Virus record (IMG/VR): IMGVR_UViG_3300023179_000009
Span: 124,001 to 188,000 of that record
Strand: one strand, 5' to 3'
Length of the DNA: 64,000 nucleotides
Shown here in pieces: positions 38-45,524 of this stretch. The position numbers were made by a program, and so were the translations under genes. Every line of letters starts with the position of its first letter. The first letter of the stretch is position 1. The notes below the pieces were generated by a model that did no database searches, was not told the origin of the DNA, and was given only the letters and a program-made list of their open reading frames with translations.

Positions 38-2065
38 ATGCCAAAAACTTTACAGGGAATTGATGATTTAGGAGATTATGATAATACTTCTATTTCAACA
101 TATGTACATTGGACAACAGATGATTATAGGGTTTTTGTTCCTGCTGCGCCCACTATTAAAAGTTTAATACCGGGCGTTTATGAAATGCACAAGAGCGATA
201 ACATTGGTTTATATTTTGAAAAAATACCAGTACGTTCAGAAGGTCTCCTAAGATTCCCTGACACCAATTCAGAGCGTGTTGTAAAAGAGATTCAAAAATT
301 TTGGGAAAGAGAAGATGTTTTTGAATCGTATAGTTTAACGTATAAGCGGGGAATCCTGCTATACGGCCCCCCAGGTTGCCATGCCAAGGGAACGAAAATT
401 TTGATGTACAACGGCGATCTTAAAAAAGTTGAAGACATAGTTGTCGGTGACGAGGTTATGGGACCAGACAGTCGGCCTAGGCGTGTTTTGGAACTTATAA
501 GAGGCCAAGATCAAATGTATAAAATTACTCCAAATCGTGGCGAACCTTTTGTTGTGAACGGTCATCACATTTTGAGTTTACAAAGAAGCAGCAAAAGAGA
601 CTGCGCAACGCCAGAAATATTAAATATTTCTTTAAATAATTACAAAAAATTATCTAAGCCATCTCAAGTCAAATATAAATTACGTCGTTGTGCTGTAGAT
701 TTTTCGAATCTATCAAATGAAGTAATCGTAGATCCTTATTTTTTAGGTGTTTGGTTAGGAGACGGCTCAGAGAATAAAACCGAAATCAACACCGCTGATA
801 AAGAGATAAAAGATTATTTATATCAAATAGCAAGTAGTTATAATCTACACGTAACAGAGAGAAGGAAAACGGATTCTATTTGTTGCAGTTATACACTCTC
901 TAGTAATGGAGGCATTGGCGAAAATGGCTTGCGTAATGATTTGAAAAAAATCGGGGTATTTAATTCAAAACACATTCCAAATGAATATTTTGTGGCTTCA
1001 AGAGAAGTCCGCTTGCAACTTCTAGCAGGGATAATTGACACAGACGGTGGTTATTCAACGGCTTCTTGGAGGAAGAATCAAAAATTTAAAAATAAAGGCT
1101 ATAAAGGTTATTTTGAAATAATTCAAAAGAGGGTCGATCTATCCAATCAAATTGTAAAATTGGCAAGAAGTCTTGGATTTGGAGTTACTATTCGTAGTTG
1201 TAAAAAAACAATTAAAAAAACCGGGTTTGTAGGAGAATATCAAAGAATTAGTATTTTTGGAGACATTTCCATTATTCCTACAAAAATTCTTAGAAAGAAT
1301 GCTCTTAAAGGTCGTGCAAATAAAGACCCACTTCGCACGGGAATATCTTTAATAGAATCTTTGGGCTTTGGTGATTTTTATGGCTTCACGCTGTCGGGAG
1401 ATCATCTATACCTCACAGATGATTTTATTGTTCACCACAACTCTGGTAAATCGTGTACAATTCAATTAATTATGGAAGATGTGGTGAACAGAGAAGGAAT
1501 TGTCATAAAGTTCACAGATCCTTTTTTGTTTACCCAAGGCATGCGAGTTCTTAGACAGATACAAGAAGATACACCTGTGGTTGTCATAATTGAAGATATA
1601 GATTCTTTTTTAGAAATTTATAACGAATCTGAGATACTAAATGTTTTAGACGGAGTAAACGAAGTCAATAAAGTTGTTTTTTTGGCTACCACTAATTACC
1701 CAGAAAAACTCGGAGCAAGAATAGTAAACAGACCCAGTCGTTTCGATAAAAGGTTTAGAATAGGTTACCCTTCAAAGACTTCAAGAAGAATGTATTTCGA
1801 ACACTTGATTGGCGAAGGAGATGAAAATAAACTTAAACAAAAAATATCAGATTTAAATTTGGATTTGGATCGCTGGGTCGAAGACACAGACGAGATGTCG
1901 GTTGCCCATCTCAAGGAGTTGTTTATACAAGTTGTTATTATAGGTGACACTTATGAAGAATCAATAGAAACTTTAAAAAGTATGAAAGAAAACCTTGAAG
2001 ATAAAGAGTTCGACAGTGAGATAGGGTTTAGTGGTCCAAAAAAATCCAAGAACTACTACGGTTAA
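38..2065 (+). CDS. AAA+ ATPase (intein-interrupted)
   Basis: Walker A reconstituted after intein removal (LLYGPPG|SGKS), Walker B VVVIIEDID, sensor/Arg finger FLATTNYPEKLGARIVNRPSRFD. Confidence 0.9.
   Translation: MPKTLQGIDDLGDYDNTSISTYVHWTTDDYRVFVPAAPTIKSLIPGVYEMHKSDNIGLYFEKIPVRSEGLLRFPDTNSERVVKEIQKFWEREDVFESYSLTYKRGILLYGPPGCHAKGTKILMYNGDLKKVEDIVVGDEVMGPDSRPRRVLELIRGQDQMYKITPNRGEPFVVNGHHILSLQRSSKRDCATPEILNISLNNYKKLSKPSQVKYKLRRCAVDFSNLSNEVIVDPYFLGVWLGDGSENKTEINTADKEIKDYLYQIASSYNLHVTERRKTDSICCSYTLSSNGGIGENGLRNDLKKIGVFNSKHIPNEYFVASREVRLQLLAGIIDTDGGYSTASWRKNQKFKNKGYKGYFEIIQKRVDLSNQIVKLARSLGFGVTIRSCKKTIKKTGFVGEYQRISIFGDISIIPTKILRKNALKGRANKDPLRTGISLIESLGFGDFYGFTLSGDHLYLTDDFIVHHNSGKSCTIQLIMEDVVNREGIVIKFTDPFLFTQGMRVLRQIQEDTPVVVIIEDIDSFLEIYNESEILNVLDGVNEVNKVVFLATTNYPEKLGARIVNRPSRFDKRFRIGYPSKTSRRMYFEHLIGEGDENKLKQKISDLNLDLDRWVEDTDEMSVAHLKELFIQVVIIGDTYEESIETLKSMKENLEDKEFDSEIGFSGPKKSKNYYG
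377..1441 (+). mobile_element. Intein (355 aa) with in-frame LAGLIDADG homing endonuclease, inserted in the Walker A motif
   Basis: Starts CHAKGTKILM, block B VVNGHHIL, LAGLIDADG motifs LGVWLGDG and LLAGIIDTDG, ends FYGFTLSGDHLYLTDDFIVHHN followed by Ser+1. Confidence 0.93.
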
Positions 2066-2080
2066 TTTGGAGTATTAATT

Positions 2081-5000
2081 GTGCTACAAGAACGCCAGCA
2101 ACTTTTAAAACTGTGTGTTTCCTCTTTGGAAAAAAAAGGTTTTTCCGAGGATCAGAGATACAAAGACAGGCTCAAGAGAGAATTGAAAGAAATAGATGCC
2201 CAAGGAGAGCATGAGTATCTATTAAATTTACAAAATCAATTTCAATCAAAGGGATTGATTTTGCCTTATAATCAACATAATCTTCTTGTTTATTATCTTT
2301 TAGATTTGTGTAAAGATTTTGATATTGAAAAAGAATATGCTTGGTATCAAGGTGAGTTTCCAGATATTGATATCGATTATTTAAAAGATGTTCGTGATTA
2401 CATTAAACGTACTTGGGCCGCAGAAAATTTTGGTCAAGATAAAATTTGCGAGATTGGAACATATGGAACAAGTGGTATTAAATCGGCCATTTTAGATATG
2501 GCACGAGTCCATGACGCTGAAAAAGATAGAATTCAGGCTATTACAACAAAGATGTCCGACAAGGACGAAGATGGGCATGATTTAGAGTGGGAAAAAGCTT
2601 TAGAGACATACCCGGAATTTAAATCTTATTGTGAAGATCACTCAGAAGTTGCCGATGCAGCCAAAGCATTATTAGACAGAATACGCACAGGGGGCGTTCA
2701 CGCTGGTGGCTTAATTGTTGCTGATCGTCGTTTAGATGGATTTGTTCCACTTGAAGTTAGAATGGTGAACAAAGAAAATCCAAATGGGGTTATTTGCTCG
2801 GCTTGGACAGAAGGTTTGAACCGTCAAGATCTTGGCCCTGTGGGTTTGATTAAATTTGACTTGTTGGTAATTAGCAATTTAATGCAAATAGCCTTGGCTT
2901 GTGACCTTATAAAAAAAAGACACAGTATTGAAAAAATATGCGCCGCACCTAATCAATGGGATTTCTCCGATTTAAATTATCTCAATGACCCAAAAGCATT
3001 GGCCATGGCAGACAAGGGTGATTTAAAATGTATTTTTCAATTTGATAGCGAAGGCATAAGGAATCTGGTTAAACGTGGTGGGGTTTCTAGTTTTGATGAT
3101 TTAGCAGCTTACTCAGCCATTTACCGCCCAGGGCCTTTAAATATGTCGATGGACGTTCATTATTGTAAAAGAAAAAGAGGCGAAGAGCCTTATGAAATTC
3201 ACCCTTTAATGCAAAAGTCTCTTGCTAAGACTTACGGAATTTTGGTTTTTCAAGAACAAGTTATGGACATCTTGCGTGTTGTTGGTGAAATCCCAGACAT
3301 GCACACAGAGAAGGTCCGAAAAGCTATCTCTAAAAAGAAAATTAAAGATTTTATAAAATACAAAGAAATGTTTATTAAAAATGGACAAAAAAATTTAGGA
3401 GAAAGCGAAGAATATGTTGAGAATTTGTGGAGTACTATAGAAAGTTTTGCAGAATATGGTTTTAATAAAACTTTGACCGAAGATACTATAATAGATTGTG
3501 TTGATGGCTCTAAACAAATTAAACACATAGGTGTTGGCGACAAGGTTTATTGCATAAACGAAAAAGGAGAACGAGCAGAAACAGAAGTTGTAGCAGTTCA
3601 CGATCATGGCGTAATTGATGTTGTTGAAGTCACATTTGATGACGGGTACTCGGTGAAATGCACATTAGATCATAAATTTTTAACCGAAGAAGGGCAAATT
3701 CCACTTTGGAAAATTATTCAAGATAATTTGGTTGTGCTTAGTTCTCCGTTGGGAGAACAAAATGCCACAGAGAAAAAATTGGGAAGCAATTTGCGGAGAG
3801 ATTCTCGGCAACAGAAAAAAAATTATAGAACATCGCAAGAATTGTACAAAATGCAGAGAGATGTATTTGCAAAAGAGAACAGAAAAATACAATCACAAAT
3901 CTCATTGCGGAAAGAAATTTCCAACAAAACACAAACTAGCAGATCACTTGAAAGAATGTCAGGACTGTATTTATTTGAAATGGCGAGAGACAGGAAAGAA
4001 ACACATATCTCGATGCGGGATAGAATTTTTGAGATACAGTTTGTTGGCGGAACACCATCGTCATTGTGCGAAATGCACGGAAATAAAAAAAGAGAACATT
4101 CAAAATCGGATGGACAAGTTAAACAAAGACAACCTGTCTCCAGATCGCAAGGCTATATTTTCTGCAACTGCCAAGAAAACTTCGGCAAGGAAAGATGTTC
4201 AAGAAGCAAGATCTGCACAATTAAAAAGATGGAGGGACAACAACCCAGAAGAGTTTGCGAGATCTATAGAAAAGGCACAACATGCTCCCAAAAAATCAAA
4301 AATGGAAACGTGGTTGAGAAAATATCTGGGATGGAAGCCGAAGAAAATATGTTGTGGGAAAGACAGGAAATTTGTGGATTTAGTAAAGAAAAATATTTGG
4401 ATAGAGGTGGACGGACCGTTCCACTTTTGGCAGGTCGGATCAAAATCGAACAAAAGAGGTCACAATTTAAACTATGTTCAACTCAGAGACCAGATGCTCA
4501 AAGAGGAGTGTTTGAGGAGACAAGATATAATGCTTTTGAGATTGAGCATGACTTGTTTTCACAAAAAAACAGGAGAAATGAAGAAGGAAAGTTTGGATTT
4601 GTTCCAGACTATGCTCCGATCTCCAATACCGGGGATTTGGTGCATAGGAAAGTTCTACGAATTGTGCCCGTGGGCAAAAGACAATGTTACGATCTTGAAG
4701 TTGCTGTAAGCACACATAACTTTATTTTGCCAAATGGGGTTGTCACATCGAATAGCCACTCTTATGCATACACTTATATATCGGCAAGGCTTCTTTGGCT
4801 AAAGGCGCATTATCCTCTTGAGTTCTACGCTGCTATTTTGATGTGTGAAACCGATACGGATAAAATAAAAGATTACAAGATCGATGCCGAGAAGCATGGA
4901 ATTGAAGTTTTGCCTATTCATATAAATTATTCTAAAGAAAATTTTACTATTCACGATAACAAAATATATTTTGGTTTTTCCAATATTAAATCTATAGGAG

Positions 5001-6124
5001 AAGAAGTTGCAAAAAGAATAGTGACCAATCAGCCATATAAAAACGTAACAGACTTCCTTGATAGGTTCGGCACAGATTTAACTTGCATCAAAGCTCTTGT
5101 TTCTCTTGGTGTTTTTGGTGATAATCGTGTCAAGATTAGAAAATTTACAGAGTACTATAAGGGAAAAATAAACTCAAGAAAAGATAGAAAAAAAAGATTC
5201 GAGCAATCTTTAGAAAAAAAATTACAAGAATTAAAAGATTTGTTGTTGGAAGAAATTAATGAAAACGATCCTGATTTTCAATCTCTTTGCACATTTACAC
5301 CGGAATCTCAGTCTTTATGGGTGTCTCGATTTGAAAAAATTACAAGAGAAGTTGATTACAATTATCAAGGCAATAAAAGAAAAAAACAAGTTACTTTTTT
5401 AAAACAATTAGAAGATTTGGCAAAAAAAAGATCTAGTATAATTGAAAACTTTCATCTTAAAGAAAAAGAAGATGATGGTGTGGATTCTTATGAATTTTTT
5501 AATACTTCATCTATCAAAATAGACGATAAAGAAATTGATATCTTGAATGATGAGTTAATTATTGATGGCAAAAAGTTTTTTCCAAAAGCCGAATCTAATT
5601 ATTATGGTTTTCAATGGAAGCACATTTTAGAAACTTGTGATCAATACTCCGGAAAAACTATTGATAATTTTTTACAAGAAATTGAAAATCAAAACGACAA
5701 GTCCGGAGTTATACAAATTCAAGTTTTAGCCGTGAAGAAGAAAACCAGCAAAAGAGGCACAGATTTTTATAGCATGGAAGTTGAGGATGCAAACGGGAAA
5801 AAGGTTTTTGTCAATGTTTGGAAAGATGATTATCTAAGGTTTAAAGATAGGTTCGTATCTGGCGAGTTGTTGTCTATAAAAGTAACGCCGCCATCTGGTG
5901 GTTTTAGCACATTCACCTTCTGCTCTATTCCAAGACACAAACGCAAAGAAATTCCTGATAAGGAGTGTGACCAAAGATGTATTGTTCTTGAGCCTCCAAA
6001 ATTTGAAAATTTAAAGCCCGACACTGAAGAAAGAATCATGAAATTTAATACGGAGATTCTCAAGAAGCAATCTTCAAAAAACACCACAATTAAAACTGGT
6101 GGTTTTGAAATTTTTCAAAATTAA
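2081..6124 (+). CDS. dnaE: DNA polymerase III alpha subunit, lacking N-terminal PHP domain, intein-containing
   Basis: Catalytic FPDIDID, GVHAGG, GLIKFDLL, FQFDS, SAIYRPGP, YGILVFQEQVM, YGFNK|SHS, KAHYPLEFYAA and a C-terminal OB fold; GTG start with GGAG upstream. Confidence 0.93.
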   Translation: MLQERQQLLKLCVSSLEKKGFSEDQRYKDRLKRELKEIDAQGEHEYLLNLQNQFQSKGLILPYNQHNLLVYYLLDLCKDFDIEKEYAWYQGEFPDIDIDYLKDVRDYIKRTWAAENFGQDKICEIGTYGTSGIKSAILDMARVHDAEKDRIQAITTKMSDKDEDGHDLEWEKALETYPEFKSYCEDHSEVADAAKALLDRIRTGGVHAGGLIVADRRLDGFVPLEVRMVNKENPNGVICSAWTEGLNRQDLGPVGLIKFDLLVISNLMQIALACDLIKKRHSIEKICAAPNQWDFSDLNYLNDPKALAMADKGDLKCIFQFDSEGIRNLVKRGGVSSFDDLAAYSAIYRPGPLNMSMDVHYCKRKRGEEPYEIHPLMQKSLAKTYGILVFQEQVMDILRVVGEIPDMHTEKVRKAISKKKIKDFIKYKEMFIKNGQKNLGESEEYVENLWSTIESFAEYGFNKTLTEDTIIDCVDGSKQIKHIGVGDKVYCINEKGERAETEVVAVHDHGVIDVVEVTFDDGYSVKCTLDHKFLTEEGQIPLWKIIQDNLVVLSSPLGEQNATEKKLGSNLRRDSRQQKKNYRTSQELYKMQRDVFAKENRKIQSQISLRKEISNKTQTSRSLERMSGLYLFEMARDRKETHISMRDRIFEIQFVGGTPSSLCEMHGNKKREHSKSDGQVKQRQPVSRSQGYIFCNCQENFGKERCSRSKICTIKKMEGQQPRRVCEIYRKGTTCSQKIKNGNVVEKISGMEAEENMLWERQEICGFSKEKYLDRGGRTVPLLAGRIKIEQKRSQFKLCSTQRPDAQRGVFEETRYNAFEIEHDLFSQKNRRNEEGKFGFVPDYAPISNTGDLVHRKVLRIVPVGKRQCYDLEVAVSTHNFILPNGVVTSNSHSYAYTYISARLLWLKAHYPLEFYAAILMCETDTDKIKDYKIDAEKHGIEVLPIHINYSKENFTIHDNKIYFGFSNIKSIGEEVAKRIVTNQPYKNVTDFLDRFGTDLTCIKALVSLGVFGDNRVKIRKFTEYYKGKINSRKDRKKRFEQSLEKKLQELKDLLLEEINENDPDFQSLCTFTPESQSLWVSRFEKITREVDYNYQGNKRKKQVTFLKQLEDLAKKRSSIIENFHLKEKEDDGVDSYEFFNTSSIKIDDKEIDILNDELIIDGKKFFPKAESNYYGFQWKHILETCDQYSGKTIDNFLQEIENQNDKSGVIQIQVLAVKKKTSKRGTDFYSMEVEDANGKKVFVNVWKDDYLRFKDRFVSGELLSIKVTPPSGGFSTFTFCSIPRHKRKEIPDKECDQRCIVLEPPKFENLKPDTEERIMKFNTEILKKQSSKNTTIKTGGFEIFQN
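3470..4753 (+). mobile_element. Intein (428 aa) in DnaE with Thr at position 1 and an out-of-frame endonuclease gene inside
   Basis: Removing TLTEDT...VVTSN restores conserved YGFNKSH; block B VKCTLDHKFLT, block F CYDLEV, C-terminal SN plus Ser+1. Confidence 0.9.
3762..4709 (+). CDS. Vsr/DUF559-like homing endonuclease with N-terminal Cys/His zinc-binding repeats, nested in the +1 frame of the DnaE intein
   Basis: GGGAGA at 3751-3756 precedes ATG 3762; motifs SKMETWL, FVDLV, WIEVDGPFH, RDQML; HxxxCxxC repeats at N-terminus. Confidence 0.82.
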   Translation: MPQRKNWEAICGEILGNRKKIIEHRKNCTKCREMYLQKRTEKYNHKSHCGKKFPTKHKLADHLKECQDCIYLKWRETGKKHISRCGIEFLRYSLLAEHHRHCAKCTEIKKENIQNRMDKLNKDNLSPDRKAIFSATAKKTSARKDVQEARSAQLKRWRDNNPEEFARSIEKAQHAPKKSKMETWLRKYLGWKPKKICCGKDRKFVDLVKKNIWIEVDGPFHFWQVGSKSNKRGHNLNYVQLRDQMLKEECLRRQDIMLLRLSMTCFHKKTGEMKKESLDLFQTMLRSPIPGIWCIGKFYELCPWAKDNVTILKLL

Positions 6125-35853: not shown

Positions 35854-35915
35854 TTATTCCATATTGACATTTTGAAAAAAATTATACAATACAACCAACT
35901 GTGGAGAAAAAACTA

Positions 35916-37511
35916 ATGTCCAATAGTAATATTTTTTCAACTAAAACCAAAAAAACTGGGTTTTCTACAAATACAAAAAACAATGCTGGAGGCGATGCTT
36001 ATGAATTTGATCCAAAACATTGTTTGGCTCAAATCGCTGCCACAAACACATTTAGTGGAACTTTTTATGCAACCGCAGAGCAAAATTTTAATTTAGCCAA
36101 AGAATCTGCATTGCGTTTGAAACACGACCCAGAATTCATTGCAAAAGTTGCAATTTATTCTCGTGATAAGTCCTACATGAAAGACATGCCTTGCTTCCTG
36201 ACGGTGTTGCTCTCGGATATTAGCAAGCCTTTGTTTCGCAAAGTTTTTCGTCGTGTGGTTGATAATGGGAAAATGCTTCGAAATGTTATTCAAATGGCTC
36301 GAAGTGGAGTTGTAACCGGAAAAAAAGTTAATGTATCGGCAGGAAGTTGGAGGCACGCCATACAAGAGTGGTTTAATACTCAAAGTTCTTCTAGTATTTT
36401 TAAAGCTTCTATAGGCAACAATCCAACCATGCACGACATTTTAAGAATGTCGCACCCAAAACCAAATTCAATTGAAAAACAATCTTTGTTCGCTTACCTC
36501 TCAGGCAAAGAATTCGATTTTGAAAAACTTCCAGATCAAGTTAAAAAACTTCAAGAATTTAAATCAGGCAAATCAAAAGATATCCCTGATGTCGATTTTA
36601 GATTTTTAGACTCTTTGAATCTTGGTCAAAAAGAGTGGGAAACAATCGCTATTCAATCTCCTTGGCAAATGACAAGGATGAATCTTTTAACTTTTGCTAG
36701 ACATAATGTTTTTGCAAATGAAGATGTTATTCAAATCGTGGCAAATAAATTAAAAGACAAAAAATTAATTAAAAAGTCTCGTGCGTTTCCATACCAATTA
36801 TTCGCTGCTTGGAGACAAGTTGAGAATCAAGTTAATTATTGGATACCTGAAATAATTAAATCATCACTCGAAGAGGCTATGGAAGTTGCCATCGACAATG
36901 TCCCAGAAATCCCTGGAAAGGGTCTGGTCTGTGTGGACTGCTCTGGATCCATGACTTCACCAATAACCGGTTTTAGAAACCACAGGAGTAACTCTAGTGT
37001 ATCTTGCAGCGACGTTGCTGGACTTTTAGCTTCAGCCATACATCGAAAAAACAAATCTGTTGAGGTTTGGACTTTTTCGGATAGTGCCAACATGGTTGAA
37101 TTAGACCTTAAAGACAATGTGCTAAAAAACACAGAAAAATTAAATCGTGCTGGCGGGGGAACCAATATATCGGCACCAATGCACCGTTTCAATTCAGACT
37201 TCAAAAACGCTGATTGGATTTTATATGTATCAGACTATGAGTCTTGGATTGACTCGCCATCTGCTGGTTACGGTTATAACTCAACGGGTCTGTCCTATGA
37301 ATGGGACATTTTTAAGAAAAGAAACAATCACGCTAAATTAATTTGTTGTGATTTGACCCCTAGAGATAACTCTCAAATTTCTGTTAGAAAAGATGTTCTT
37401 CAAGTCGGAGGATTCTCAGATCAAGTTTTTGATGTCGTTTCTTCTTTTGTTTCTCAATCTAAAAGCAAAGATTTTTGGGTTGAAGAAATAAATAAAATAT
37501 CTTTGGACTAA
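35916..37511 (+). CDS. Ro60/Rsr-like TROVE-vWA RNA-binding protein
   Basis: NNAGGDAY, GTFYA, KDMP, PWQMTRMNL, SRAFPYQLF, vWA VDCSGSM, GGTNIS, VSDYESW, VGGFSDQVF; GGAG RBS 9 nt before ATG. Confidence 0.92.
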   Translation: MSNSNIFSTKTKKTGFSTNTKNNAGGDAYEFDPKHCLAQIAATNTFSGTFYATAEQNFNLAKESALRLKHDPEFIAKVAIYSRDKSYMKDMPCFLTVLLSDISKPLFRKVFRRVVDNGKMLRNVIQMARSGVVTGKKVNVSAGSWRHAIQEWFNTQSSSSIFKASIGNNPTMHDILRMSHPKPNSIEKQSLFAYLSGKEFDFEKLPDQVKKLQEFKSGKSKDIPDVDFRFLDSLNLGQKEWETIAIQSPWQMTRMNLLTFARHNVFANEDVIQIVANKLKDKKLIKKSRAFPYQLFAAWRQVENQVNYWIPEIIKSSLEEAMEVAIDNVPEIPGKGLVCVDCSGSMTSPITGFRNHRSNSSVSCSDVAGLLASAIHRKNKSVEVWTFSDSANMVELDLKDNVLKNTEKLNRAGGGTNISAPMHRFNSDFKNADWILYVSDYESWIDSPSAGYGYNSTGLSYEWDIFKKRNNHAKLICCDLTPRDNSQISVRKDVLQVGGFSDQVFDVVSSFVSQSKSKDFWVEEINKISLD

Positions 37512-37546: not shown

Positions 37547-37634
37547 AGACAAGTAGCTCAATGGCAGAGTCCGTCATTGTAAGAAGGTTTGCACCTTTGG
37601 ACGGAGGTTGCAGGTTCAATTCCTGTCTTGTCTT
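37547..37634 (+). tRNA. tRNA-like RNA (Thr-UGU-like loop) with 17-nt hairpin insertion in the anticodon arm
   Basis: Acceptor AGACAAG/CTTGTCT, D arm GCTC-AATGGCA-GAGT, stem CCGTC/GACGG enclosing 24 nt, T arm GCAGG-TTCAATT-CCTGT; no CCA. Confidence 0.75.
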
Positions 37635-37797: not shown

Positions 37798-38214
37798 GTG
37801 AAAAATAAAATTTATCTTGTTGTTTCTTTAATTCTGGGCTTATTTTTTGTTTTCTTTATTTCTAATTTAGAAAACAAAAAATCTAATTCTAATTCATTGA
37901 TTAATAAAAAAACTCAGCAAGAAAATAATTTTGTTGTTGAAATAAACAATAAAATAGATGAATCAAAAATTTATGAGATTGCCTATCAAAGAGGATACAA
38001 TTCTTTTATGAGACAAGTGGGAAGACCAGATCTTGTTCACAACGGCAACAATAATGAAAAAATTGAGATGTATACATCAAATATAATTGAAGAGATGTCA
38101 GAGGAAGAAAAACAAAAAATAGAAAAAATATCTGCCAAAGCTTATGTCGATGGATATCATAAAGCAGGCGATTCCACCGTTTGTCCTAGATTCAAAGAAG
38201 CAAGACACAATTAA
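37798..38214 (+). CDS. Membrane-anchored hypothetical protein
   Basis: GTG with GGAG RBS; N-terminal TM helix. Confidence 0.65.
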   Translation: MKNKIYLVVSLILGLFFVFFISNLENKKSNSNSLINKKTQQENNFVVEINNKIDESKIYEIAYQRGYNSFMRQVGRPDLVHNGNNNEKIEMYTSNIIEEMSEEEKQKIEKISAKAYVDGYHKAGDSTVCPRFKEARHN

Positions 38215-38927
38215 TTATCCAGCGGTCTTGGAATATAATTTTTTGGGTAAACGCCTTGTGGGTTGTTTTTGTCTACTATTGGTATTTTTCCTAGTAAACC
38301 TTCAACCTTATCGGGGAAAATATCTTTTTTTCCATAAATTACCAATATCCAGCCTCCCCATAATTTATTAAACTTGTCCATGCTCCAAGTTTGTATCCTT
38401 AGACTTCTGTCAGAGTTGTCTATAATTTTTACAATTTTATTTTTTTCGTCGTAGTGGCAAATCACTATGGCATGACCAGGAACGTCCATTAGGGCACCAC
38501 GACCCTCAGCCATTGCACGTTTTAATAATTCTATAGCTTTGATTTTGTTATTATAAACATTTTCAAATTTCACCCCAAAAGTGCTTAATTTAGAAGAAGC
38601 GTCTTTGGGGCCAGAATAACTTTTGCAACCCGGCCTGCTAGTCAAAGGATCTGGCTCTAAAAGTTCTTTTATCTCTCCCCAACGAGCCAAACACTCTAAA
38701 GATGAAAAAACACATTGTATACCTGTGTAATTTTTAACTCTGCAATCCATAGGTATAGGACACTGTACATCTTTTAACTCATCTTCATCCGGGGTTCCAG
38801 AGTCGTATTCTTGTGTGTAAGTTGTGCTATAGTTTGAATCCCAAACAGGTAGTTGGGAAAAATTTTTTTCTTTTTGTGTACAACCAGAGACAAAAAGAAA
38901 AAAGATTACAATTAAAATTTTTCTCAT
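38211..38927 (-). CDS. Lipoprotein with papain-like (C39-like) cysteine peptidase domain
   Basis: Lipobox FVSG|C; QCVFSS (Cys), PGHAI (His), IIDNSD (Asp/Asn); start at MRKIL with AAGGAGG. Confidence 0.7.
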   Translation of the reverse strand: MRKILIVIFFLFVSGCTQKEKNFSQLPVWDSNYSTTYTQEYDSGTPDEDELKDVQCPIPMDCRVKNYTGIQCVFSSLECLARWGEIKELLEPDPLTSRPGCKSYSGPKDASSKLSTFGVKFENVYNNKIKAIELLKRAMAEGRGALMDVPGHAIVICHYDEKNKIVKIIDNSDRSLRIQTWSMDKFNKLWGGWILVIYGKKDIFPDKVEGLLGKIPIVDKNNPQGVYPKNYIPRPLDN

Positions 38928-38998
38928 TACAGCCTCCTTGTGTAATACTCTAATATTTAGTATTATCAACTAATCATATTCCACAGCGGTACACGATT

Positions 38999-39976
38999 AT
39001 GTTTAAGTCAATTACAAAAGAACAAGCAAAAAACCTTGTCTTGGAAATACTCAAAAAATCTGGGAAGAGATTGAGTCAAGAATTACAAGGCGATAACGAA
39101 GAGTTCCTAGATCGTTTGCTGAGACAGTTCAAAACAAAAATTGCACGTTGTTCTTGGAAGAAATCACAACATTGGTGCAAGTGGGATAATGATGGACCAA
39201 TTCTTATGCCGGATTTTACTAGAATATATTACACAAAAGGAACCACCGAGGTGCTTGTGCAAGAGTTTGCTCCTCAAATTAGACTTCTAAAGTTTAAAAG
39301 TGATTTAGTTCTTAAGTCAAATAATTTTGATTTAATTGAAAACAAAACTGACTTAGCTAAAGTTTTTAATTATTCTTTATCTCTTCCCTATGTTGTTTTT
39401 ATTTTTAAATTTGTTGATGGCTTTTTTGTAGAGGTTAAGTGTTCTTTTTTAGACAAACCTCTTAAAAATTTACAAGAAAAACCACTAAAACCTTATTTGC
39501 CAAATATAGATTCTAATTTAAATGTTTGCCTGGGATCTGGCTTTGATAAATCTATGTTAGAAAAGGGAAATGTGACCCAACAATCAGCTTTGGTTTTAAA
39601 TTATTTTTGGAACTCTGTTTTTTCAAATGAATGGGCGGATCACTATTGGTATTATCGTTCTTATTTTCAGAAAGGTGATATTCGTTTGTCAAATTTGGAT
39701 TCTTGGCAGTCCAATTCTATGAACGATCCACTTTTCGTGATAGATGGCGTTAACTGGACGCACAATTCAGATTTTAACTATGGTGACACTATAGTGAAAA
39801 TGTTTGACAACGATAAAAAAAATATAGTACTACAAGAAGAACTATACCAAGAACTATCTGAAGATTTTTTGAAAGAAGTTGTTAAAATAATCAATGAAAA
39901 TATAGAAAATCTCAACAACAGACCTCCAGAAAATTTAGTTGATCAATTGGCAGACTACCTCGTTTCAAATATTTGA
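38999..39976 (+). CDS. Prokaryotic E2-like (PRTRC protein B type) conjugating enzyme
   Basis: SLPYVVF and PYLPNIDSNLNVCLG (catalytic Cys), FWNSVFS; first gene of the E2-JAB-E1-Ubl operon. Confidence 0.65.
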   Translation: MFKSITKEQAKNLVLEILKKSGKRLSQELQGDNEEFLDRLLRQFKTKIARCSWKKSQHWCKWDNDGPILMPDFTRIYYTKGTTEVLVQEFAPQIRLLKFKSDLVLKSNNFDLIENKTDLAKVFNYSLSLPYVVFIFKFVDGFFVEVKCSFLDKPLKNLQEKPLKPYLPNIDSNLNVCLGSGFDKSMLEKGNVTQQSALVLNYFWNSVFSNEWADHYWYYRSYFQKGDIRLSNLDSWQSNSMNDPLFVIDGVNWTHNSDFNYGDTIVKMFDNDKKNIVLQEELYQELSEDFLKEVVKIINENIENLNNRPPENLVDQLADYLVSNI

Positions 39977-39982
39977 GAAAAA

Positions 39983-40897
39983 ATGAACACTGAATGGACT
40001 CCAGATTTTCCAGTTTATGTTTATTATAAAGACATGAAACTTCCGGATAGTGGCAATTATTTTGTGATTGCTGGCAATGGTTGCTGGATGCACAAAGACA
40101 CAGGTTTGTGTAAGTGTTTTATACCAGTCGATAGAATTAGTTTTTTAGACGATCTTAAAACTGACCTAAGATTAGAGTTTAACTTGCCAAAAATACCACC
40201 AGATTTGGTTTGGCAAGTTAAACAATTTTTCAAAATTGTTTTCGATAATTTTTCGTCAGAGGCAGAGGTTAATTTATTATTTAATAAAAAAGAAAATAAG
40301 TTTAAGATCCATGTGCCAGAGCAAATTGTTAGCCACACTAGTGTGAAATATAAACGTTGGAGTTCAAACCAATCAGAGGATTTAAAAGATTATTTATTTG
40401 TTGGAACTTTTCATTCACATAGTGACTTTGATTCATTTCATAGTCACACGGATGTTCAAGATGAGACACATCTGGATGGTGTTCATTTTACTTTTGGCAA
40501 TAACGATAAAAAAGAGTTTAGTATAACTGCAAGTATAGTTATAAATGGATTTAGAAAAGAAGTAGATCCTTTAAATTTCTTACAAGGAATTCAAAATTCG
40601 GACCTTGAAGAAAGATTCATTTTTATTAATCATAAAAATGAAAAACAGGATGAACTGTTGCAAGAAGTTAACGATTGGTTAGAAAATGTAAAACCTTTAA
40701 ATAATAAGTATCTAAAAAAACAATACGCACACTGGAAAGACGGTATGTTTTCTTCCACCCTCAGGAACCATTTTGGCAATGGTCCTTTTGAGGTTTTGTC
40801 AAAAAAAGAAGACAAAATATCACTTAAATCATTGAATGGTGGTGCATTTGAATTATCAAATAAACTTTTTGAAATAAGGTCAAAAGATGGAAAATAA
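39983..40897 (+). CDS. JAB/MPN+ deconjugating metallopeptidase
   Basis: SEAEV (Glu) and GTFHSHSDFDSFHSHTDVQDE (HxH-x7-S-xx-D). Confidence 0.85.
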   Translation: MNTEWTPDFPVYVYYKDMKLPDSGNYFVIAGNGCWMHKDTGLCKCFIPVDRISFLDDLKTDLRLEFNLPKIPPDLVWQVKQFFKIVFDNFSSEAEVNLLFNKKENKFKIHVPEQIVSHTSVKYKRWSSNQSEDLKDYLFVGTFHSHSDFDSFHSHTDVQDETHLDGVHFTFGNNDKKEFSITASIVINGFRKEVDPLNFLQGIQNSDLEERFIFINHKNEKQDELLQEVNDWLENVKPLNNKYLKKQYAHWKDGMFSSTLRNHFGNGPFEVLSKKEDKISLKSLNGGAFELSNKLFEIRSKDGK

Positions 40898-41597
40898 TAT
40901 AGAAAAAATTAAAATCATAGGTCTGGGCGGAATTGGCTCCTATCTTTTAGATCCAATCTCTAGGTATCTGTCTTGCTCCGAAAAACAATATGAGATAACT
41001 TTTATCGATGGTGATTTTTATGAAGAAAAAAATTTAAATAGACAAAACTTTAGTTTATTTCAAAATAAAGCAAAGGATGCATTCGAGAGAATGCAAAGCG
41101 TTTTTAAAAACATTCACTTTAAATACAAGCCAGAATATGTAAACGAAGACAATGTGGTGTCTTTAATAAGAAATAATGATATAATATTTTTATGTGTAGA
41201 TAATCACTCCACCAGAAAAACTGTATCGGATAGGTGCAAAGAATTAGATAATGTTGTTTTGATAAGTGGAGGAAATGATTTAATAGATGGGAATGTTATA
41301 ATTTATATTAGAAAAAACTCAGTAGATATCACACGATCCTTAACGGATTTGGATCCAAGAATACACAACCCAAAAGACAGCAATCCTTCAACTTTGAAAA
41401 ATAATAGTGGTTGCCAAAATTCTACCCAATCCGAACCTCAATTGCTTTTCACAAATTTTGCCGTTGCCTCCACTATGCTGAACTGTTTTAGAAGATACGA
41501 AAATAACGATGTGAATTTTCATCAAGTTTATATTGATATACAAACTCTAAGAACTAGACCTTCACCAGAGGTAGAAATTGAAAAGAGGAATTTTTAA
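40887..41597 (+). CDS. ThiF/E1-like activating enzyme
   Basis: IIGLGGIGS, IDGDFYEEKNLNRQ, FLCVDN, ISGGND, candidate catalytic Cys in SGC. Confidence 0.9.
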   Translation: MENNIEKIKIIGLGGIGSYLLDPISRYLSCSEKQYEITFIDGDFYEEKNLNRQNFSLFQNKAKDAFERMQSVFKNIHFKYKPEYVNEDNVVSLIRNNDIIFLCVDNHSTRKTVSDRCKELDNVVLISGGNDLIDGNVIIYIRKNSVDITRSLTDLDPRIHNPKDSNPSTLKNNSGCQNSTQSEPQLLFTNFAVASTMLNCFRRYENNDVNFHQVYIDIQTLRTRPSPEVEIEKRNF

Positions 41598-41942
41598 ATG
41601 TCGCAAGAAAGAAGAACAGATCAAGGCGATCTAACAAACAAAAAAGATACCCTAGACTCCACCAAAGACAAAACCGAGATTGTTTTTTCTCAAGCAACAA
41701 AAACTGATTCTAAGGTAAGAGTTGTTCATGGGGCCAATCAAGAATATTTCAATTTAGCAGGAAAGACCGTGGGATCAGTTAGAAAAAATTTAAGAGAAAT
41801 TTTTAATATACCTAGCGATGCAGAGGCCCTCATCTCAGGAAACGCTGTTCCTGATGATTTTGTTCTTGAGGGCGGTCAATCTCTTGAATTTTTAAAAGAA
41901 AGTGGAGTAAAGGGTTTTGAAAAAATGTGCTTCTTTTATTGA
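41598..41942 (+). CDS. Ubiquitin-like (beta-grasp) protein with C-terminal extension
   Basis: VRVVHG...GKTVGSVR...FNIP...ALISG...VLEGGQSLEFLKESGVKG then FEKMCFFY. Confidence 0.75.
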   Translation: MSQERRTDQGDLTNKKDTLDSTKDKTEIVFSQATKTDSKVRVVHGANQEYFNLAGKTVGSVRKNLREIFNIPSDAEALISGNAVPDDFVLEGGQSLEFLKESGVKGFEKMCFFY

Positions 41943-42549
41943 AACTAGGATTGGTAATAATTATATTGATTCTATAAATAATCACCTTAGACACTTGTGT
42001 GGTTGGGATTTTTTTGTTTTAACTACAAAAAAATCTTGGAATAGTTTTTACAATTGCTTAAATTTAAAATTTAAATACATTAACGAAATAAAAGATTCAA
42101 ATGATTACAACAAAATGCTTACTAGTTTTGATTTTTGGAATTTTTTTGTGAAAAAAAAATATGATAGAGTTTTAATATGTCAACACGACTCTGGCTTGCT
42201 CTTAAATAACATTGATGATTATTTAGAGTATGATTATGTTGGATCCCCCTGGGATTTTCAAGAACATGGTGGCAATGGCGGCTTGTCTTTAAGGAATCCC
42301 AAAGTTATGAGGGATATATGTTCCAATTTTTTATTTGATACAAGTTATTTTAACGAAGACATCTTCTTCTGTGATATTATGTACAAACAAAAAATAGGAA
42401 ATATGGCCCCTAGAGAAGTTTGTAGAAAATTTTCTATGGAGGTAATACTAGAATTAAACACAACAGGATATCACGGTATTGAAAAATATCATCATCCAAA
42501 TGTGGTTGATACGATAAAGTCTCAAGAAATTATTTCTTCAAAACTTTAA
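41917..42549 (+). CDS. DUF5672-like (glycosyltransferase-like) protein
   Basis: VLICQHDS, YDYVGSPW, GGNGGLSLRN, NEDIFF, FSME, GYHG. Confidence 0.7.
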   Translation: MKKCASFIETRIGNNYIDSINNHLRHLCGWDFFVLTTKKSWNSFYNCLNLKFKYINEIKDSNDYNKMLTSFDFWNFFVKKKYDRVLICQHDSGLLLNNIDDYLEYDYVGSPWDFQEHGGNGGLSLRNPKVMRDICSNFLFDTSYFNEDIFFCDIMYKQKIGNMAPREVCRKFSMEVILELNTTGYHGIEKYHHPNVVDTIKSQEIISSKL

Positions 42550-42755: not shown

Positions 42756-45524
42756 TCAACTCGTTGTTAAGGTTGCTATTTGACGACTCATTTTTCCGAT
42801 TGGTTGTTTTTTTGGAACAATGCCTTTTTGTCTATTTTTTATAATTTTTGGCACATAAGCAAAATCACAAGGATCTCCTACGTCACACCAACCGCCATCA
42901 ATTTGAGATCTTAAATTGTTAACTTCTTGCGGTTGCTCTTCTTTAAATTCTATTAATTTGGATTTTTTAATTACTTGTGTTTTTAGGATATTATCGCTGG
43001 CTAAAGCATAGCCATAACTTGTTGTTCTTTTCAAGAAAGGTTTTAAGTTTTCACTTCTAGCCTTCCCGCCAGTTTTTGCAAATCCCGTAATTGGAGGAGG
43101 CCCGTAAAATTGCGTTAAAGAATGAAAGCCCTTGCAAGCAACGCCTTTTGTTGGGAATGTATTGAAATGTATATTTTCCTTATTTTCTCCATTTAAGCTT
43201 ATTCCTCCTTCAATATAGGGTTGAATTCCTATGACAAAATTGCCCCCGATAATAGAAGATCCAAAGATGCTTTGATTGTATATTAGTTTTATATCAAGCA
43301 AGCCGCTGGCAATTAGTCCAAAAGAGTCTATGGCAACATTGTTCGACTTAATATTTTCCGATTTGGGCGAAACAAAAGAACCGCCAATCATGCCGAGAGA
43401 TAAGGATTTTTCAGACTCTCCGGATGTTGTTGCCCCTCCGCTTACATCAGAATTATTATAGATCAGTTGCTCAAGGGCCGATCCACTAATTGACGCCCCG
43501 CCGGAGGACACTTCATTGTTGAACATTCCCGTATTCGATGTTCCACCCAACACCGCATCGGTATTATTTTTTGCCGATCCGCTTACCCAGACTAATTTTC
43601 TTTCTCCTCCCAAGAAACCATTATTCAACGAACTGTAGCTTAAAGGACCAGGAGTTGAGAAGTTGGCACTAGGTGTGTTCCCACCAGAAACTGTTAGTGT
43701 GATCGGCCCAAAACCAAATAAAGTTGAGAGGCCATTTTGTGGAGGCGTGCTTATAGATCGGAATATTCTAAAACCAGGGTTGGCACTATAGGTTAATCTT
43801 CCGGGAAATTGTCCATTGAAAAAAGCAATCGGATAAGATTCGGGTACATTTAAAATGTATGTTCCAGATTGCAGTCCGTAGAAATTAGATTCACGATCAT
43901 TGTTAAAAACATATTCAAGTTGACCATCTATTCCGGTTGGTCTTACACGAACTTCATTGATCACAGGGTTGTTGGGATTTAGTGACGGTCTTAGTAACGA
44001 TACATTTTGCCAATTGCCATTTAAAACCCTTCCACCAACGGCAGATCCTCCCAAAATTAAATTGCCGCTACCTGTCGATACTTCTAAACCCAATACCGCC
44101 GATCCAGACAAGCCAACTCCATTTGTTGGCTCAAATTTCGGGTAAGATACAAGTGACGCACCTGAAGCAATAATTGATTTAGAAACATCAACAGATACGT
44201 TGTTTACTTGCTCACCCTTAGTATCTCCGTTTAAAACCAAACCACCATTTCCAAATTCGAAAATATTTTGAGTGTAAAAAACTGATATTTCTGCATAATC
44301 AACCAAGCCAACTGAGTTAAGTGCTGGGTCTCCTAAAACTTCTAAAACTACACCAAAGTCTTCGTTGTTAACCTCGTTATAATCCCAAACTTTCCCCCAT
44401 GTATCTGTATTGCCGCCATATGAATATGGCGGCAATACAGATGACGATGTCCAATTTCCATTTAATTTTTTATTTGTTGGTACTATCTCTTTGATTCCAT
44501 TATTGCTCCAAACCAATCCAACAAACGAATCTGATATTTCTCCTGCGGGGGCATATTTTTTAACTTTAAGCGATATTCCAAGTACCACACTAAACTCTGG
44601 AATTTCTAATTTGAAATTAGATAAATATAAAAATGTACTTGATCCAACCGATGAATTGAATGTCACTATCGCTGTCTGGAGGTCATTTGGTAAAAGTGAT
44701 CCATTTAAGTTATTCCAACTAACAGCCCCACTCACCCCTGTTGGTAAATTGTTTGCTGTATTTGCAAAATTTTTGATTGGGTTTGATAATCTTCCAACAA
44801 CGTCAGACCTGCCGCCTGCTTTTAATCCATAACCCTCTACAATAAAATTGTTCAAACGAACTGCTGACCCACCTAAAGCAACGCCCCCTGTTGCCGGAAT
44901 GTCTCTTAGAACTCTAACTCCTGCTTCTCCTGTGGCGAAGAACAAATTATCAGGAACAATAAATCTTGTTATTTTTCTTATTGTCGAATTCCCACTCAGC
45001 ACCACATCTGTGTTTGCTCCAAGACAAGATGTTGAATAAACAAGATTATTTAAACCTCCCAAATAACCATCATTGTATGACTGGTAACTTAAAGGTGATG
45101 TTCCTATGTTGGCTGTTATTGTTAAAGTTACCGTTCCCCAGAAAAAGTCATATTTGTTACCATCTAAAGCAGTCTTGTTTCCTTTAAAATTTGATCCTAT
45201 ATAATTAACTCTTAATCTTCCAACATTCAAAAAAGCAATAGGGTGCGACTCTGGTATATTGAATATGTAAGTTCCTATGGCCAACCCATATATTCCGAAT
45301 TCTCCACCAAAAACATAAACATTTTCTCCATTTATATTTTTTATCTCAACATTATTTACAACAACATTTGGCCCGGTAGTTGCGAGGGTCTGCCTCAAAC
45401 AGATTAACGTTGCGGATTCGGTGTTGTAAATTGTTGAAACGCCTGAAAAGCCACCGTTAAATAAACCTCCGGAGGATTCTTCCAAGTACTCTGATTGTGC
45501 GGACAGGTTGATTTCTTTGGCCAT
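42756..45524 (-). CDS. Large Gly/Ser-rich probable virion protein with duplicated internal domain
   Basis: GGxxxSGxA repeats; two copies of YGL..GTY..N.PES.PIAF...T.T...PLSY.S.N.G.LGG...LV; domain shared with 27806..31045. Confidence 0.65.
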   Translation of the reverse strand: MAKEINLSAQSEYLEESSGGLFNGGFSGVSTIYNTESATLICLRQTLATTGPNVVVNNVEIKNINGENVYVFGGEFGIYGLAIGTYIFNIPESHPIAFLNVGRLRVNYIGSNFKGNKTALDGNKYDFFWGTVTLTITANIGTSPLSYQSYNDGYLGGLNNLVYSTSCLGANTDVVLSGNSTIRKITRFIVPDNLFFATGEAGVRVLRDIPATGGVALGGSAVRLNNFIVEGYGLKAGGRSDVVGRLSNPIKNFANTANNLPTGVSGAVSWNNLNGSLLPNDLQTAIVTFNSSVGSSTFLYLSNFKLEIPEFSVVLGISLKVKKYAPAGEISDSFVGLVWSNNGIKEIVPTNKKLNGNWTSSSVLPPYSYGGNTDTWGKVWDYNEVNNEDFGVVLEVLGDPALNSVGLVDYAEISVFYTQNIFEFGNGGLVLNGDTKGEQVNNVSVDVSKSIIASGASLVSYPKFEPTNGVGLSGSAVLGLEVSTGSGNLILGGSAVGGRVLNGNWQNVSLLRPSLNPNNPVINEVRVRPTGIDGQLEYVFNNDRESNFYGLQSGTYILNVPESYPIAFFNGQFPGRLTYSANPGFRIFRSISTPPQNGLSTLFGFGPITLTVSGGNTPSANFSTPGPLSYSSLNNGFLGGERKLVWVSGSAKNNTDAVLGGTSNTGMFNNEVSSGGASISGSALEQLIYNNSDVSGGATTSGESEKSLSLGMIGGSFVSPKSENIKSNNVAIDSFGLIASGLLDIKLIYNQSIFGSSIIGGNFVIGIQPYIEGGISLNGENKENIHFNTFPTKGVACKGFHSLTQFYGPPPITGFAKTGGKARSENLKPFLKRTTSYGYALASDNILKTQVIKKSKLIEFKEEQPQEVNNLRSQIDGGWCDVGDPCDFAYVPKIIKNRQKGIVPKKQPIGKMSRQIATLTTS

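Follow-up and report, generated by a model that had tools for sequence, protein, structure and literature searches.

The stretch of DNA analysed here, referred to as the window, covers 64,000 nucleotides (bases 124001-188000) of the IMG/VR virus record IMGVR_UViG_3300023179_000009. At window positions 38999-41942 we found four tightly packed plus-strand open reading frames (ORFs), predicted to encode an E2-like enzyme, a JAB/JAMM metallopeptidase, a ThiF/MoeB-type E1 and a ubiquitin-like protein (Ubl). Judged from sequence and structure prediction, the four genes probably constitute a self-contained, phage-owned pathway for Ubl conjugation of the Prok-E2_D/PRTRC (class 6d) type. Direct support was obtained for the folds, the invariant catalytic residues, the signature of a processed glycine in the Ubl, the conservation of the operon and purifying selection. 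The genes and their predicted functional residues are located as follows.

38999..39976, plus strand: ORF1, putative E2-like enzyme, 325 amino acids
39503..39529, plus strand: predicted E2 active-site segment of ORF1, Asn169-Cys177 (N-IDSNLNV-C), from motif coordinates
39983..40897, plus strand: ORF2, predicted JAB/JAMM metallopeptidase, 304 amino acids
40259-40261, plus strand: Glu93 of ORF2, upstream residue of the JAMM motif, from motif coordinates
40412..40453, plus strand: predicted JAMM zinc/catalytic motif of ORF2, H144-S-H146-x7-S154-x2-D157, from motif coordinates
40887..41597, plus strand: ORF3, predicted ThiF/MoeB-type E1, 236 amino acids
40920-40937, plus strand: GLGGIG nucleotide loop of ORF3, from motif coordinates
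41031-41045, plus strand: NLNRQ of ORF3, from motif coordinates
41412..41414, plus strand: Cys176 of ORF3, candidate thioester cysteine in a variable loop past the adenylation core, from its invariance
41598..41942, plus strand: ORF4, predicted Ubl, entire ORF, 114 amino acids
41598..41915, plus strand: predicted mature part of ORF4, residues 1-106, from homologue alignment and model
41913-41915, plus strand: Gly106 of ORF4, from motif coordinates
41916..41942, plus strand: C-terminal tail of ORF4, FEKMCFFY (8 residues), and stop codon, from comparison with the related locus L003

The ORFs lie exactly where the initial annotation had seen four adjacent same-strand genes, and its view that a phage carries the machinery is borne out by the carrier, a 458,813-bp virus record (91% complete as estimated by CheckV) with a terminase large-subunit gene scoring over the Pfam cut-off. 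ORF1 and ORF2 are separated by 6 nucleotides, ORF2 and ORF3 overlap by 11, and ORF4 follows ORF3 with 0 nucleotides between them. Over a range of 26-97% identity the gene set is intact, as are the catalytic residues, and neither varies. The ratio of non-synonymous to synonymous substitution rates (dN/dS) relative to L003, the nearest relative, was 0.020 for the E2, 0.068 for the JAB, 0.040 for the E1 and 0.109 for the Ubl, and purifying selection on all four genes is estimated to be strong. A strain variant differed by 21 single-nucleotide polymorphisms across the four genes, 17 of them synonymous and 4 non-synonymous. Cassette DNA was found free of indels in contigs of four runs from four studies (two near-identical run contigs may include the window's own source sample), and freshwater is the setting of the runs in which the locus recurs. 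Since the motifs are invariant in divergent homologues (26-58% identity), dN/dS is low and the DNA is kept in four runs, we do not regard them as chance occurrences. A six-frame search included, the entire carrier genome holds a single ThiF and a single JAB gene. Scanning the operon for promoters and terminators gave nothing above chance.

ORF1 is predicted to have a long helix near its N-terminus (residues 7-58), after which come a beta-sheet core (74-151), the active-site loop and helices towards the C-terminus. All 51 close homologues are metagenomic, some of them on contigs of up to 693 kb, and P165, Y166, N169, C177 and G179 are invariant among them. The active-site stretch reads PYLPNIDSNLNVCLG, with the N169 codon at 39503-39505 and the C177 codon at 39527-39529. 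Both residues were invariant in alignments of 33, 14 and 40 sequences, and they are kept in the ORF1 family, in second-E2 paralogues found in relatives (see below), in distant phage members and in the PRTRC_B protein of a Cupriavidus plasmid. Classical E2s have an HPN...C motif with an 8-residue spacing from Asn to Cys; the spacing in ORF1 is the same, and the His of HPN is absent.

The alignment-based AlphaFold model of ORF1 had a mean predicted local distance difference test (pLDDT) score of 80.9, rising to ~90 over residues 121-270. It shows a six-stranded sheet with N169 and C177 in a confident loop, followed by helices. In Foldseek searches of AlphaFold DB clusters the model matched 'PRTRC system protein B' (E 9.3e-8 and 2.1e-5; template modelling (TM) score by hit 0.75) and a 'UBC core domain-containing protein' (E 1.8e-5). 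Eukaryotic E2s dominated the list against the PDB, though weakly (Foldseek E about 0.4-2, TM up to 0.4). ESM Atlas likewise links ORF1 to Prok-E2_D, the Pfam family (PF14460) to which PRTRC_B itself belongs. Neither ORF1 nor 33 of its close homologues matched PF14460 directly. A hidden Markov model (HMM) of the ORF1 family retrieved 1,019 clusters at 50% identity, 451 of them at E ≤ 1e-10. Two family members reached the PF14460 gathering score of 25: P0193 (6.9e-30 to the ORF1-family profile) with 32.7 bits and P0262 (2.9e-22) with 25.0 bits, in both cases within the region aligning to ORF1. The second E2 of locus L007 also gave a weak PF14460 match. This transitive sequence link from ORF1 to Prok-E2_D appears firmer than direct profile comparison, where hhalign aligned the ORF1 family with PRTRC_B in four collinear motif blocks, including PxLPNI..VCxG with PPYFNTWD.ICIG. 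ORF1 is accordingly predicted, from model and sequence together, to be a divergent UBC-fold protein of the Prok-E2_D/PRTRC_B superfamily.

ORF2 is made up of an N-terminal domain of PRTRC_A type, a JAMM domain and a C-terminal extension of ~100 residues. Its JAMM motif is exact, with Glu93 upstream and then HSHSDFDSFHSHTD (HxHx7Sx2D), and E93, H144, H146, S154 and D157 were invariant in 10 orthologues of 28-90% identity. Prok-JAB matched ORF2 at 5e-5 (23.6 bits by hmmscan, cut-off 25) and exceeded the cut-off, at 25.6 bits, in the six-frame search. The NCBIfam model PRTRC_A matched at 1.1e-8 over model positions 22-187 of 192 (34.9 bits, cut-off 101.8), and hhalign paired the ORF2 family with Cupriavidus PRTRC_A (86%, E 4.6e-6). 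In PADLOC the ORF2 match was at chance level (E 0.068), with no meaningful match to Cap3 or BilC. We found the sequence to be that expected of a JAMM/MPN+ metallopeptidase.

ORF3 matched Pfam ThiF at 3.8e-20 (72.5 bits, cut-off 28.1). PRTRC_ThiF (1e-13; 51.2 bits, cut-off 144.75) and MoeB (1.5e-13) scored about equally, both below their cut-offs. Among PDB sequences an uncharacterised ThiF-type protein was best, followed by MoeB, Uba4, Uba5 and ThiF, and PADLOC gave only weak matches, to the E1 part of E1-E2 (Cap2-type) proteins of cyclic oligonucleotide-based antiphage signalling systems (CBASS). The residues G12xGGxG17, R26, D43, N49/R52/Q53, K61, D105 and C176 were invariant in nine phage orthologues (41-95% identity), and all of them are also present in the ThiF proteins of the Cupriavidus PRTRC locus and of Bacillus phage WH1. 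We infer that Cys176 is equivalent to MoeB Cys187 and ThiF Cys184, the MoeB alignment stopping at residue 180. No rhodanese domain, UFD domain or CxxC zinc site was found in ORF3. It is predicted to be a minimal, single-domain ThiF-type E1 with its nucleotide-binding residues intact, the GxGxxG loop, the Arg finger (NxxRQ) and the Mg-binding Asp typical of E1 adenylating enzymes all being in place.

ORF4 starts with a conserved MSQER motif, followed by a disordered linker and a helix (residues 25-38); the beta-grasp domain spans residues 39-100, and a flexible tail then leads to Gly106. In the model, residues 39-100 form a beta-beta-alpha-beta-beta core with block-mean pLDDT of 72-81, while residues 7-28 are disordered. 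The top Foldseek match in the PDB was Caldiarchaeum ubiquitin (8.6e-4), with further matches to SUMO1, NEDD8, MoaD and the bacterial Ubl 8tyx; in the AlphaFold DB (AFDB) the model matched MoaD/ThiS and Ubl models. Profile searches of PDB sequences gave no match with the E2, JAB or Ubl family. The motif EFxKxxGxKG, which reads EFLKESGVKG in the window, is common to all 74 ORF4 homologues. After its final Gly there is a stop in 11 of 40 aligned Ubls, and the others carry unconserved tails of 1 to ~70 residues. An invariant Gly followed by either a stop or unrelated tails is classically the mark of modifiers in which processing exposes the terminal Gly. ORF4 therefore looks, in model and alignment, like a beta-grasp Ubl with an exposable C-terminal Gly.

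The initial annotation had the Ubl ending in KESGVKG, which is right for the predicted mature form, but the encoded ORF runs 8 residues further (FEKMCFFY). In L003, a 97%-related locus, a stop comes right after the Gly (AAG GGT TAG); compared with it, a 6-bp deletion (GTTAGT) in the window erased the Ubl stop codon and gave the tail. Contigs of runs X1, X2 and X4 (2018, 2015 and 2011) cover the tail site without indel, suggesting that the tail is carried and tolerated by natural populations, as expected if the JAB trims it. In the predicted pathway the tail must be removed for Gly106 to be exposed.

At the other end of the Ubl, residues 1-6 (window 41598-41615, MSQERx) include the nearly invariant M1, Q3 and R5, and the ~20 residues after them are variable and predicted to be disordered. 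MSQERx may be a docking or recognition motif. After the Ubl gene comes a DUF5672 gene (window 41917-42549, plus strand; Pfam 3.1e-28), whose listed TTG start overlaps the deletion-made Ubl tail. This gene is present in L003, and in other relatives it does not belong to the cassette.

The catalytic motifs that the initial annotation had named are all present in the four ORFs and invariant in homologues, and its assignments hold up well. For the E2 they rest on the confident model, the Foldseek matches to PRTRC_B and UBC-core proteins and the relatives reaching the PF14460 cut-off, and the predicted fold of this ORF is a UBC fold. The exact JAMM motif and the PRTRC_A match speak for the JAB, and the Pfam ThiF score for the E1. 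For the Ubl, it is the likeness of the beta-grasp model to ubiquitin, SUMO, NEDD8 and MoaD together with the processed-Gly signature.

Related loci were gathered by exact-protein contig look-ups, and a pattern scan of IMG/VR gave 4 loci. The order E2-JAB-E1-Ubl was found in all nine related loci, down to 26% E2 identity. The two most distant of these (L005 and L006) come from viral contigs on which the surrounding genes are quite different, and the same order was found again in two still more distant family members detected by HMM, in different phage backgrounds. Sampled members of the ~1,000-cluster E2-like family sit on viral or phage-like contigs, and N-terminal extensions of ~330 residues are among the extra domains that occur in the family. 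When each of the four proteins is compared with its orthologues, identity declines at a broadly similar pace in all of them and in a neighbouring TROVE protein, which fits block inheritance within a huge-phage lineage. Beyond the four cassette genes no neighbour is conserved across the distant loci, so the gene for the target probably lies elsewhere, in another part of the phage genome or in the host. No ORF1 homologue turned up when 50,697 deposited phage genomes were searched with blastn and tblastn, and ThiF matches were limited to three distant ones.

A cultured relative was found in the 230-kb Bacillus cereus jumbo phage vB_BceM_WH1 (L014, LC597490.1, 2680-5774), where gp214-gp215-gp216 correspond to E2-JAB-ThiF in the order of the window. 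Profile comparison identified the E2-like gp214 (93%, 3e-7), the JAB gp215 (98%, 1.7e-13) and the ThiF gp216; gp214 and gp215 are annotated as hypothetical proteins. A NADAR-family gene follows the trio, and no Ubl gene was identifiable at this locus. At every other locus examined a small ORF follows the E1.

In most relatives the gene just before the ORF1 orthologue encodes a second E2-like paralogue (~370 amino acids, with ~27% identity to ORF1). This gene lies at 6789-7916 in L007, 6844-7956 in L002, 6829-7947 in L010, 6835-7926 in L008, 6891-7997 in L009 and 6575-7930 in L004, and there are two copies in L005 (7932-9110 and 9104-10171). The paralogue retains the Asn and the Cys, and the presence of two E2s would suggest two target sets. 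A second, very distant ThiF (22-28% identical to ORF3) is encoded upstream of a major vault protein (MVP) homologue in L002 (468-1840), L010 (2147-3197) and L004 (405-1055), with a small JAB gene beside it in L002 and L010.

By its sequence features, the closest known system to the phage cassette appears to be PRTRC (NCBIfam TIGR03734-03742), described as operon class 6d by Iyer, Burroughs and Aravind in 2006 (PMC1779556). This class was predicted in 2006 and combines a Ubl, a JAB with an extra N-terminal domain, an E1 and an E2 without the classical His (PMC1779556). PRTRC is carried by plasmids and integrative and conjugative elements of Burkholderiales and others; its function is uncharacterised, and we found no experimental study of the cassette in the literature. 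Both systems have the order B(E2)-A(JAB)-ThiF with overlapping JAB and E1 genes, as seen in the Cupriavidus plasmid locus (L013). PRTRC_B models are among the matches of the ORF1 model, and ORF2 matches PRTRC_A including its N-terminal domain. The E1 loop Cys is common to both, the His of HPN is absent from both E2s, and both Ubls end in G-[VA]-K-G followed by a short tail. Comparison of the Ubl family with PRTRC_C by hhalign gave E 0.0098, in the C-terminal GxKG region only.

There are also differences. No PRTRC model reaches its cut-off on the phage cassette, and PRTRC_B, C and F were not detected there; PRTRC_F is absent from the entire carrier genome. The phage Ubl gene comes after the E1, whereas the PRTRC Ubl gene lies upstream. 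The phage Ubl has a ~38-residue extension bearing the conserved N-terminal motif, and the phage E2 has extra N- and C-terminal helices. Where PRTRC_B has an invariant His past the Cys, the phage family has Asn, Asp or Glu, and the cassette is carried by a phage instead of a conjugative element. The cassette contains no ParB, the sole match being a generic ParB N-terminal one (30.9 bits, cut-off 278.6) ~78 kb away. PRTRC D and E were not among the annotated neighbours, although no search was aimed at them. The label 'PRTRC-type' given in the initial annotation therefore stands as a resemblance, gene order included, but formal membership fails on cut-offs and partner genes.

Bil operons encode the Ubl, E2, JAB and E1 as separate proteins and lack an E3; they work through Cys thioesters, their Ubl ends in Gly and is sometimes processed, and it is conjugated to a phage tail protein. 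The phage cassette shares the four separate parts and the lack of an E3, and 8tyx, which the ORF4 model matches, is a Bil-type Ubl structure. The architecture of the E1 shows that the cassette is not Bil, ORF3 being a single ThiF domain of 236 residues unlike BilD; in addition, the phage E2 is predicted to be of the Prok-E2_D family and the system is encoded by the virus rather than the host. Bub systems form Tyr/Ser oxyesters without catalytic cysteines and always include the DUF6527 protease BubE. In Type I Bub (BubAB, BubCD, BubE) the JAB-E1 fusion BubCD has a JAB that cleaves the Ubl precursor and exposes its reactive C-terminus. The coupling of JAB and E1, fused in BubCD and encoded by overlapping genes in the phage, is a likeness. 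The phage cassette is not Bub because it has both cysteines, C176 of the E1 and C177 of the E2, without variation, and because a scan of ten cassette neighbours turned up no DUF6527. Type II CBASS Cap2/Cap3 has E1 and E2 chemistry plus a JAB peptidase, as here, but Cap2 unites E2 and E1 in one protein, and what it conjugates is the CD-NTase itself, no separate Ubl being involved. With separate genes instead of a fusion protein, and no CD-NTase or effector among the cassette neighbours scanned, the phage system is not CBASS.

An earlier-known pairing of Ubl and JAB in phages is that of TAPI (Ubl) and TAPK (JAB plus NlpC/P60) in lambda/T1 (PMC1779556). It likewise joins a beta-grasp Ubl ending in Gly to a JAB peptidase in a phage, but there is no E1 or E2, so it is not a conjugation cascade, and its setting is tail assembly. 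The archaeal SAMP/UbaA/JAMM1 system and the Caldiarchaeum operon, both of them cellular, also combine a small Ubl, a MoeB-like E1 and a JAMM peptidase; the SAMP system has no E2, and the Caldiarchaeum operon includes both a classical E2 and a RING E3. We found no description of a phage-borne E2-JAB-E1-Ubl cassette in the literature, of which coverage was incomplete, and an earlier description is possible. Versions encoded by phages go unmentioned in the papers on Bil and on Ubl diversity.

In the pathway that we propose, the ORF2 JAMM peptidase would cut the 8-residue tail off the ORF4 precursor, exposing Gly106. ORF3, probably in complex with the JAB, would adenylate Gly106 with ATP. Such a complex is probable because the two genes overlap, and this overlap, also found in PRTRC, recalls the JAB-E1 fusion BubCD. 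The Ubl would then probably be held as a thioester on Cys176 of ORF3 and be handed to Cys177 of ORF1. There is no E3; choice of the target is presumed to lie with ORF1, by way of its helical extensions, and the same protein would join the Ubl to a lysine of the target in an isopeptide bond. Removal of the Ubl from targets may be a further task of the JAB. We infer every chemical step, including the E1 thioester and the lysine acceptor, from sequence. Conjugation of Ubls to proteins has been demonstrated for the related bacterial pathways Bil and Bub.

Several observations weigh against this pathway. ORF1 and ORF4 have no direct family match in Pfam, NCBIfam, PADLOC or PHROGs. The ORF1 model aligned only modestly with solved E2s (VIA-align Z 5.0-5.6 over ~120 residues), and its family aligned with PRTRC_B by hhalign at E 0.11 with a narrow profile and 0.016 with a broader one, which is marginal and not significant alone. 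The ORF4 model is of moderate confidence only (mean pLDDT 62), and its mature C-terminus is Lys-Gly rather than Gly-Gly. The tail could instead mean that the Ubl is impaired in this strain. ORF3 lacks the E2-docking (UFD) domain and is as close to sulfur-carrier activators as to PRTRC_ThiF. The locus was detected in no RNA run searched. Some of these points could be taken to mean that the cassette is a decaying remnant, or that the resemblance of ORF1 and ORF4 to E2 and Ubl is fortuitous, the missing family matches and the lost Ubl stop codon being what one would expect. We strongly disfavour this explanation, against which stand dN/dS values of 0.02-0.11, the invariant catalytic residues, the 1,019 clusters related to ORF1, significant structural matches and the stability of the locus in several populations. 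It is also very improbable that ORF3 and ORF4 work as a sulfur-carrier pair like ThiS/MoaD-ThiF/MoeB, providing a thiocarboxylate for cofactor, tRNA or DNA thiolation instead of tagging proteins. Among proteins that have been characterised, MoeB, Uba4 and ThiF are indeed the best sequence matches of the E1, the ORF4 model matches MoaD/ThiS models and the phage has tRNA genes. Yet the pair never occurs without a linked E2-like protein whose Cys is invariant, and the E1s of such operons never carry a rhodanese domain (Iyer 2006, PMC1779556). No E1-fused rhodanese was found, nor any ThiG, MoaE or TtuA-like gene among the neighbours scanned, and the Ubl ends in Lys-Gly with frequent long tails.

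Two further explanations accept the enzymes and differ in what they are for. The module might conjugate the Ubl to virion proteins of co-infecting rival phages, serving as a phage-carried exclusion or defence system in the manner of Bil, which has the same four parts and tags a phage tail protein. The occurrence of the module in unrelated phage backgrounds, like that of mobile accessory genes, is consistent with this. We consider it unlikely, given that PADLOC models match neither ORF1 nor ORF4 (ORF2 at chance level, the E1 weakly) and that the E1 architecture is unlike BilD. Moreover, the cassette lies in a conserved syntenic block of a huge-phage lineage and diverges in step with TROVE, which fits a vertically inherited core function. 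A role of the JAB as a counter-defence deubiquitinase, stripping host Bil or CBASS conjugates with the other three genes as accessories, seems less likely again. JABs cleave Ubl-target conjugates in CBASS, Bil and Bub, and the JAMM site of ORF2 is intact, but the JAB has E2-like and ThiF genes of its own on either side at every locus examined, a small ORF follows at all of them except that of the Bacillus phage, and the four genes are under comparable purifying selection. The JAB itself belongs to the PRTRC_A type, its N-terminal domain being specific to the family, and PADLOC gave it no meaningful match to Cap3 or BilC.

The neighbours of the cassette in the window are a TROVE gene, a C39-like protein, DUF5672 and a 922-residue protein. 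The TROVE gene (window 35901-37511, plus strand) encodes a Ro60/Rsr-like protein with TROVE and Ro60-type vWA domains. At 37547-37634 (plus strand), 36 nucleotides after it, lies an 88-nucleotide tRNA-like gene, called tRNA-Thr by ARAGORN and scoring 43.7 bits with Rfam tRNA, with an anticodon loop of 21 nucleotides against the model's 4. Relatives carry oversize tRNA-like genes (76-100 nucleotides) after or near TROVE, with inconsistent or unreadable anticodons; the one at the same spot in L003 is called tRNA-Ala. By sequence the gene looks more like a Y-RNA-like (YrlA-type) partner of Ro60 than like a decoding tRNA. Divergent from the cassette, at 38211-38969 on the minus strand, is a gene for a 252-residue protein with a lipoprotein-type signal (…FLFVSGC). 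It is kept at this position in L002, L003, L004 and L007 and has no Pfam match; protein-language-model features grouped it with C39-like papain-fold peptidases, which we treat as a lead only. Convergent with the cassette is the gene for the 922-residue Gly/Ser/Asn-rich protein (42756-45524, minus strand), in which no family was recognised. Homologues of 560-960 residues, one with a CHRD match, occupy the same place in all close relatives and are not found there in L005 and L006.

Between TROVE and the Ubl cassette, four relatives encode an MVP-shoulder protein of ~900 residues (L002 3152-5926, L007 3109-5850, L008 4062-6722 and L010 3988-6735). The window's genome has no MVP gene, and the window and L003 are without both MVP and the second E2. 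L009 has a second E2 and no adjacent MVP. For these reasons MVP is not an obligate partner, and we rejected a vault link for the window. A preprint describes MVP homologues in gut phages and does not mention ubiquitin, ThiF, JAB or TROVE. Relatives also carry dense tRNA arrays (7-18 genes per locus) downstream of a large reverse-strand gene, among them L007 13324-16909, L002 14168-16575 and L004 14466-16693; the matching place in the window holds tRNA-Pro, tRNA-Gly and tRNA-Cys only. The window, which has a G+C content of ~32%, also contains a sigma-70-like factor, glycosyltransferases, four tRNA genes and the following two genes.

38-2065, plus strand: AAA ATPase with a Hint and homing-endonuclease intein
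2081-6124, plus strand: PolIII-alpha-type DNA polymerase with an intein splicing domain

No proteasome gene was found on the carrier genome. There is one ClpP-family gene, ~8 kb ahead of the window, but it is uninformative for a link to degradation because ClpP-like proteases are common prohead proteases, and we discarded that link.

Returning to the phage-owned conjugation pathway, the initial annotation had offered four possible roles, namely tagging of host proteins, modification of the phage virion, blocking of competing phages and reversal of host Ubl defence, among which our data do not decide. In our own ranking host takeover or counter-defence comes first, followed by modification of proteins of the phage itself and, in third place, the exclusion of rival phages. 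In the relatives the cassette adjoins the MVP homologue and the pair of Ro60 and tRNA-like RNA. A wider reading, which we put forward tentatively and hold to be less likely than not to be correct in full, is that huge and many smaller phages run their own E3-less Ubl signalling in the host, often with two E2s for two target sets. Host defence or housekeeping proteins would then be tagged for inactivation or degradation, or alternatively assemblies built by the phage would be decorated. MSQER, on the disordered arm of the Ubl, would be a handle for a downstream factor.

Bacterial Ubl conjugation has recently been shown in CBASS, Bil and Bub, where it is always host machinery and mostly directed against phages. 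The phage cassette is the reverse case, a complete and selectively maintained predicted cascade carried by the virus. It appears to be a streamlined, virus-owned branch of the class 6d/PRTRC cassette that is widespread in uncultured phages. Its 236-residue E1 without a UFD domain and its non-canonical E2 are of mechanistic interest for the evolution of E1-to-E2 transfer. Since the E2-JAB-E1 trio is present in the cultured Bacillus phage vB_BceM_WH1, the question can be addressed by experiment. Finding the targets would reveal what phages use Ubls for, be it host takeover, counter-defence, their own assembly or competition between phages, and would probably also explain the PRTRC cassette of conjugative elements. 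If our reading is true, the cassette would be a viral counterpart to the Ubl-based immunity of host Bil and CBASS, and a new layer of post-translational warfare between phage and host.

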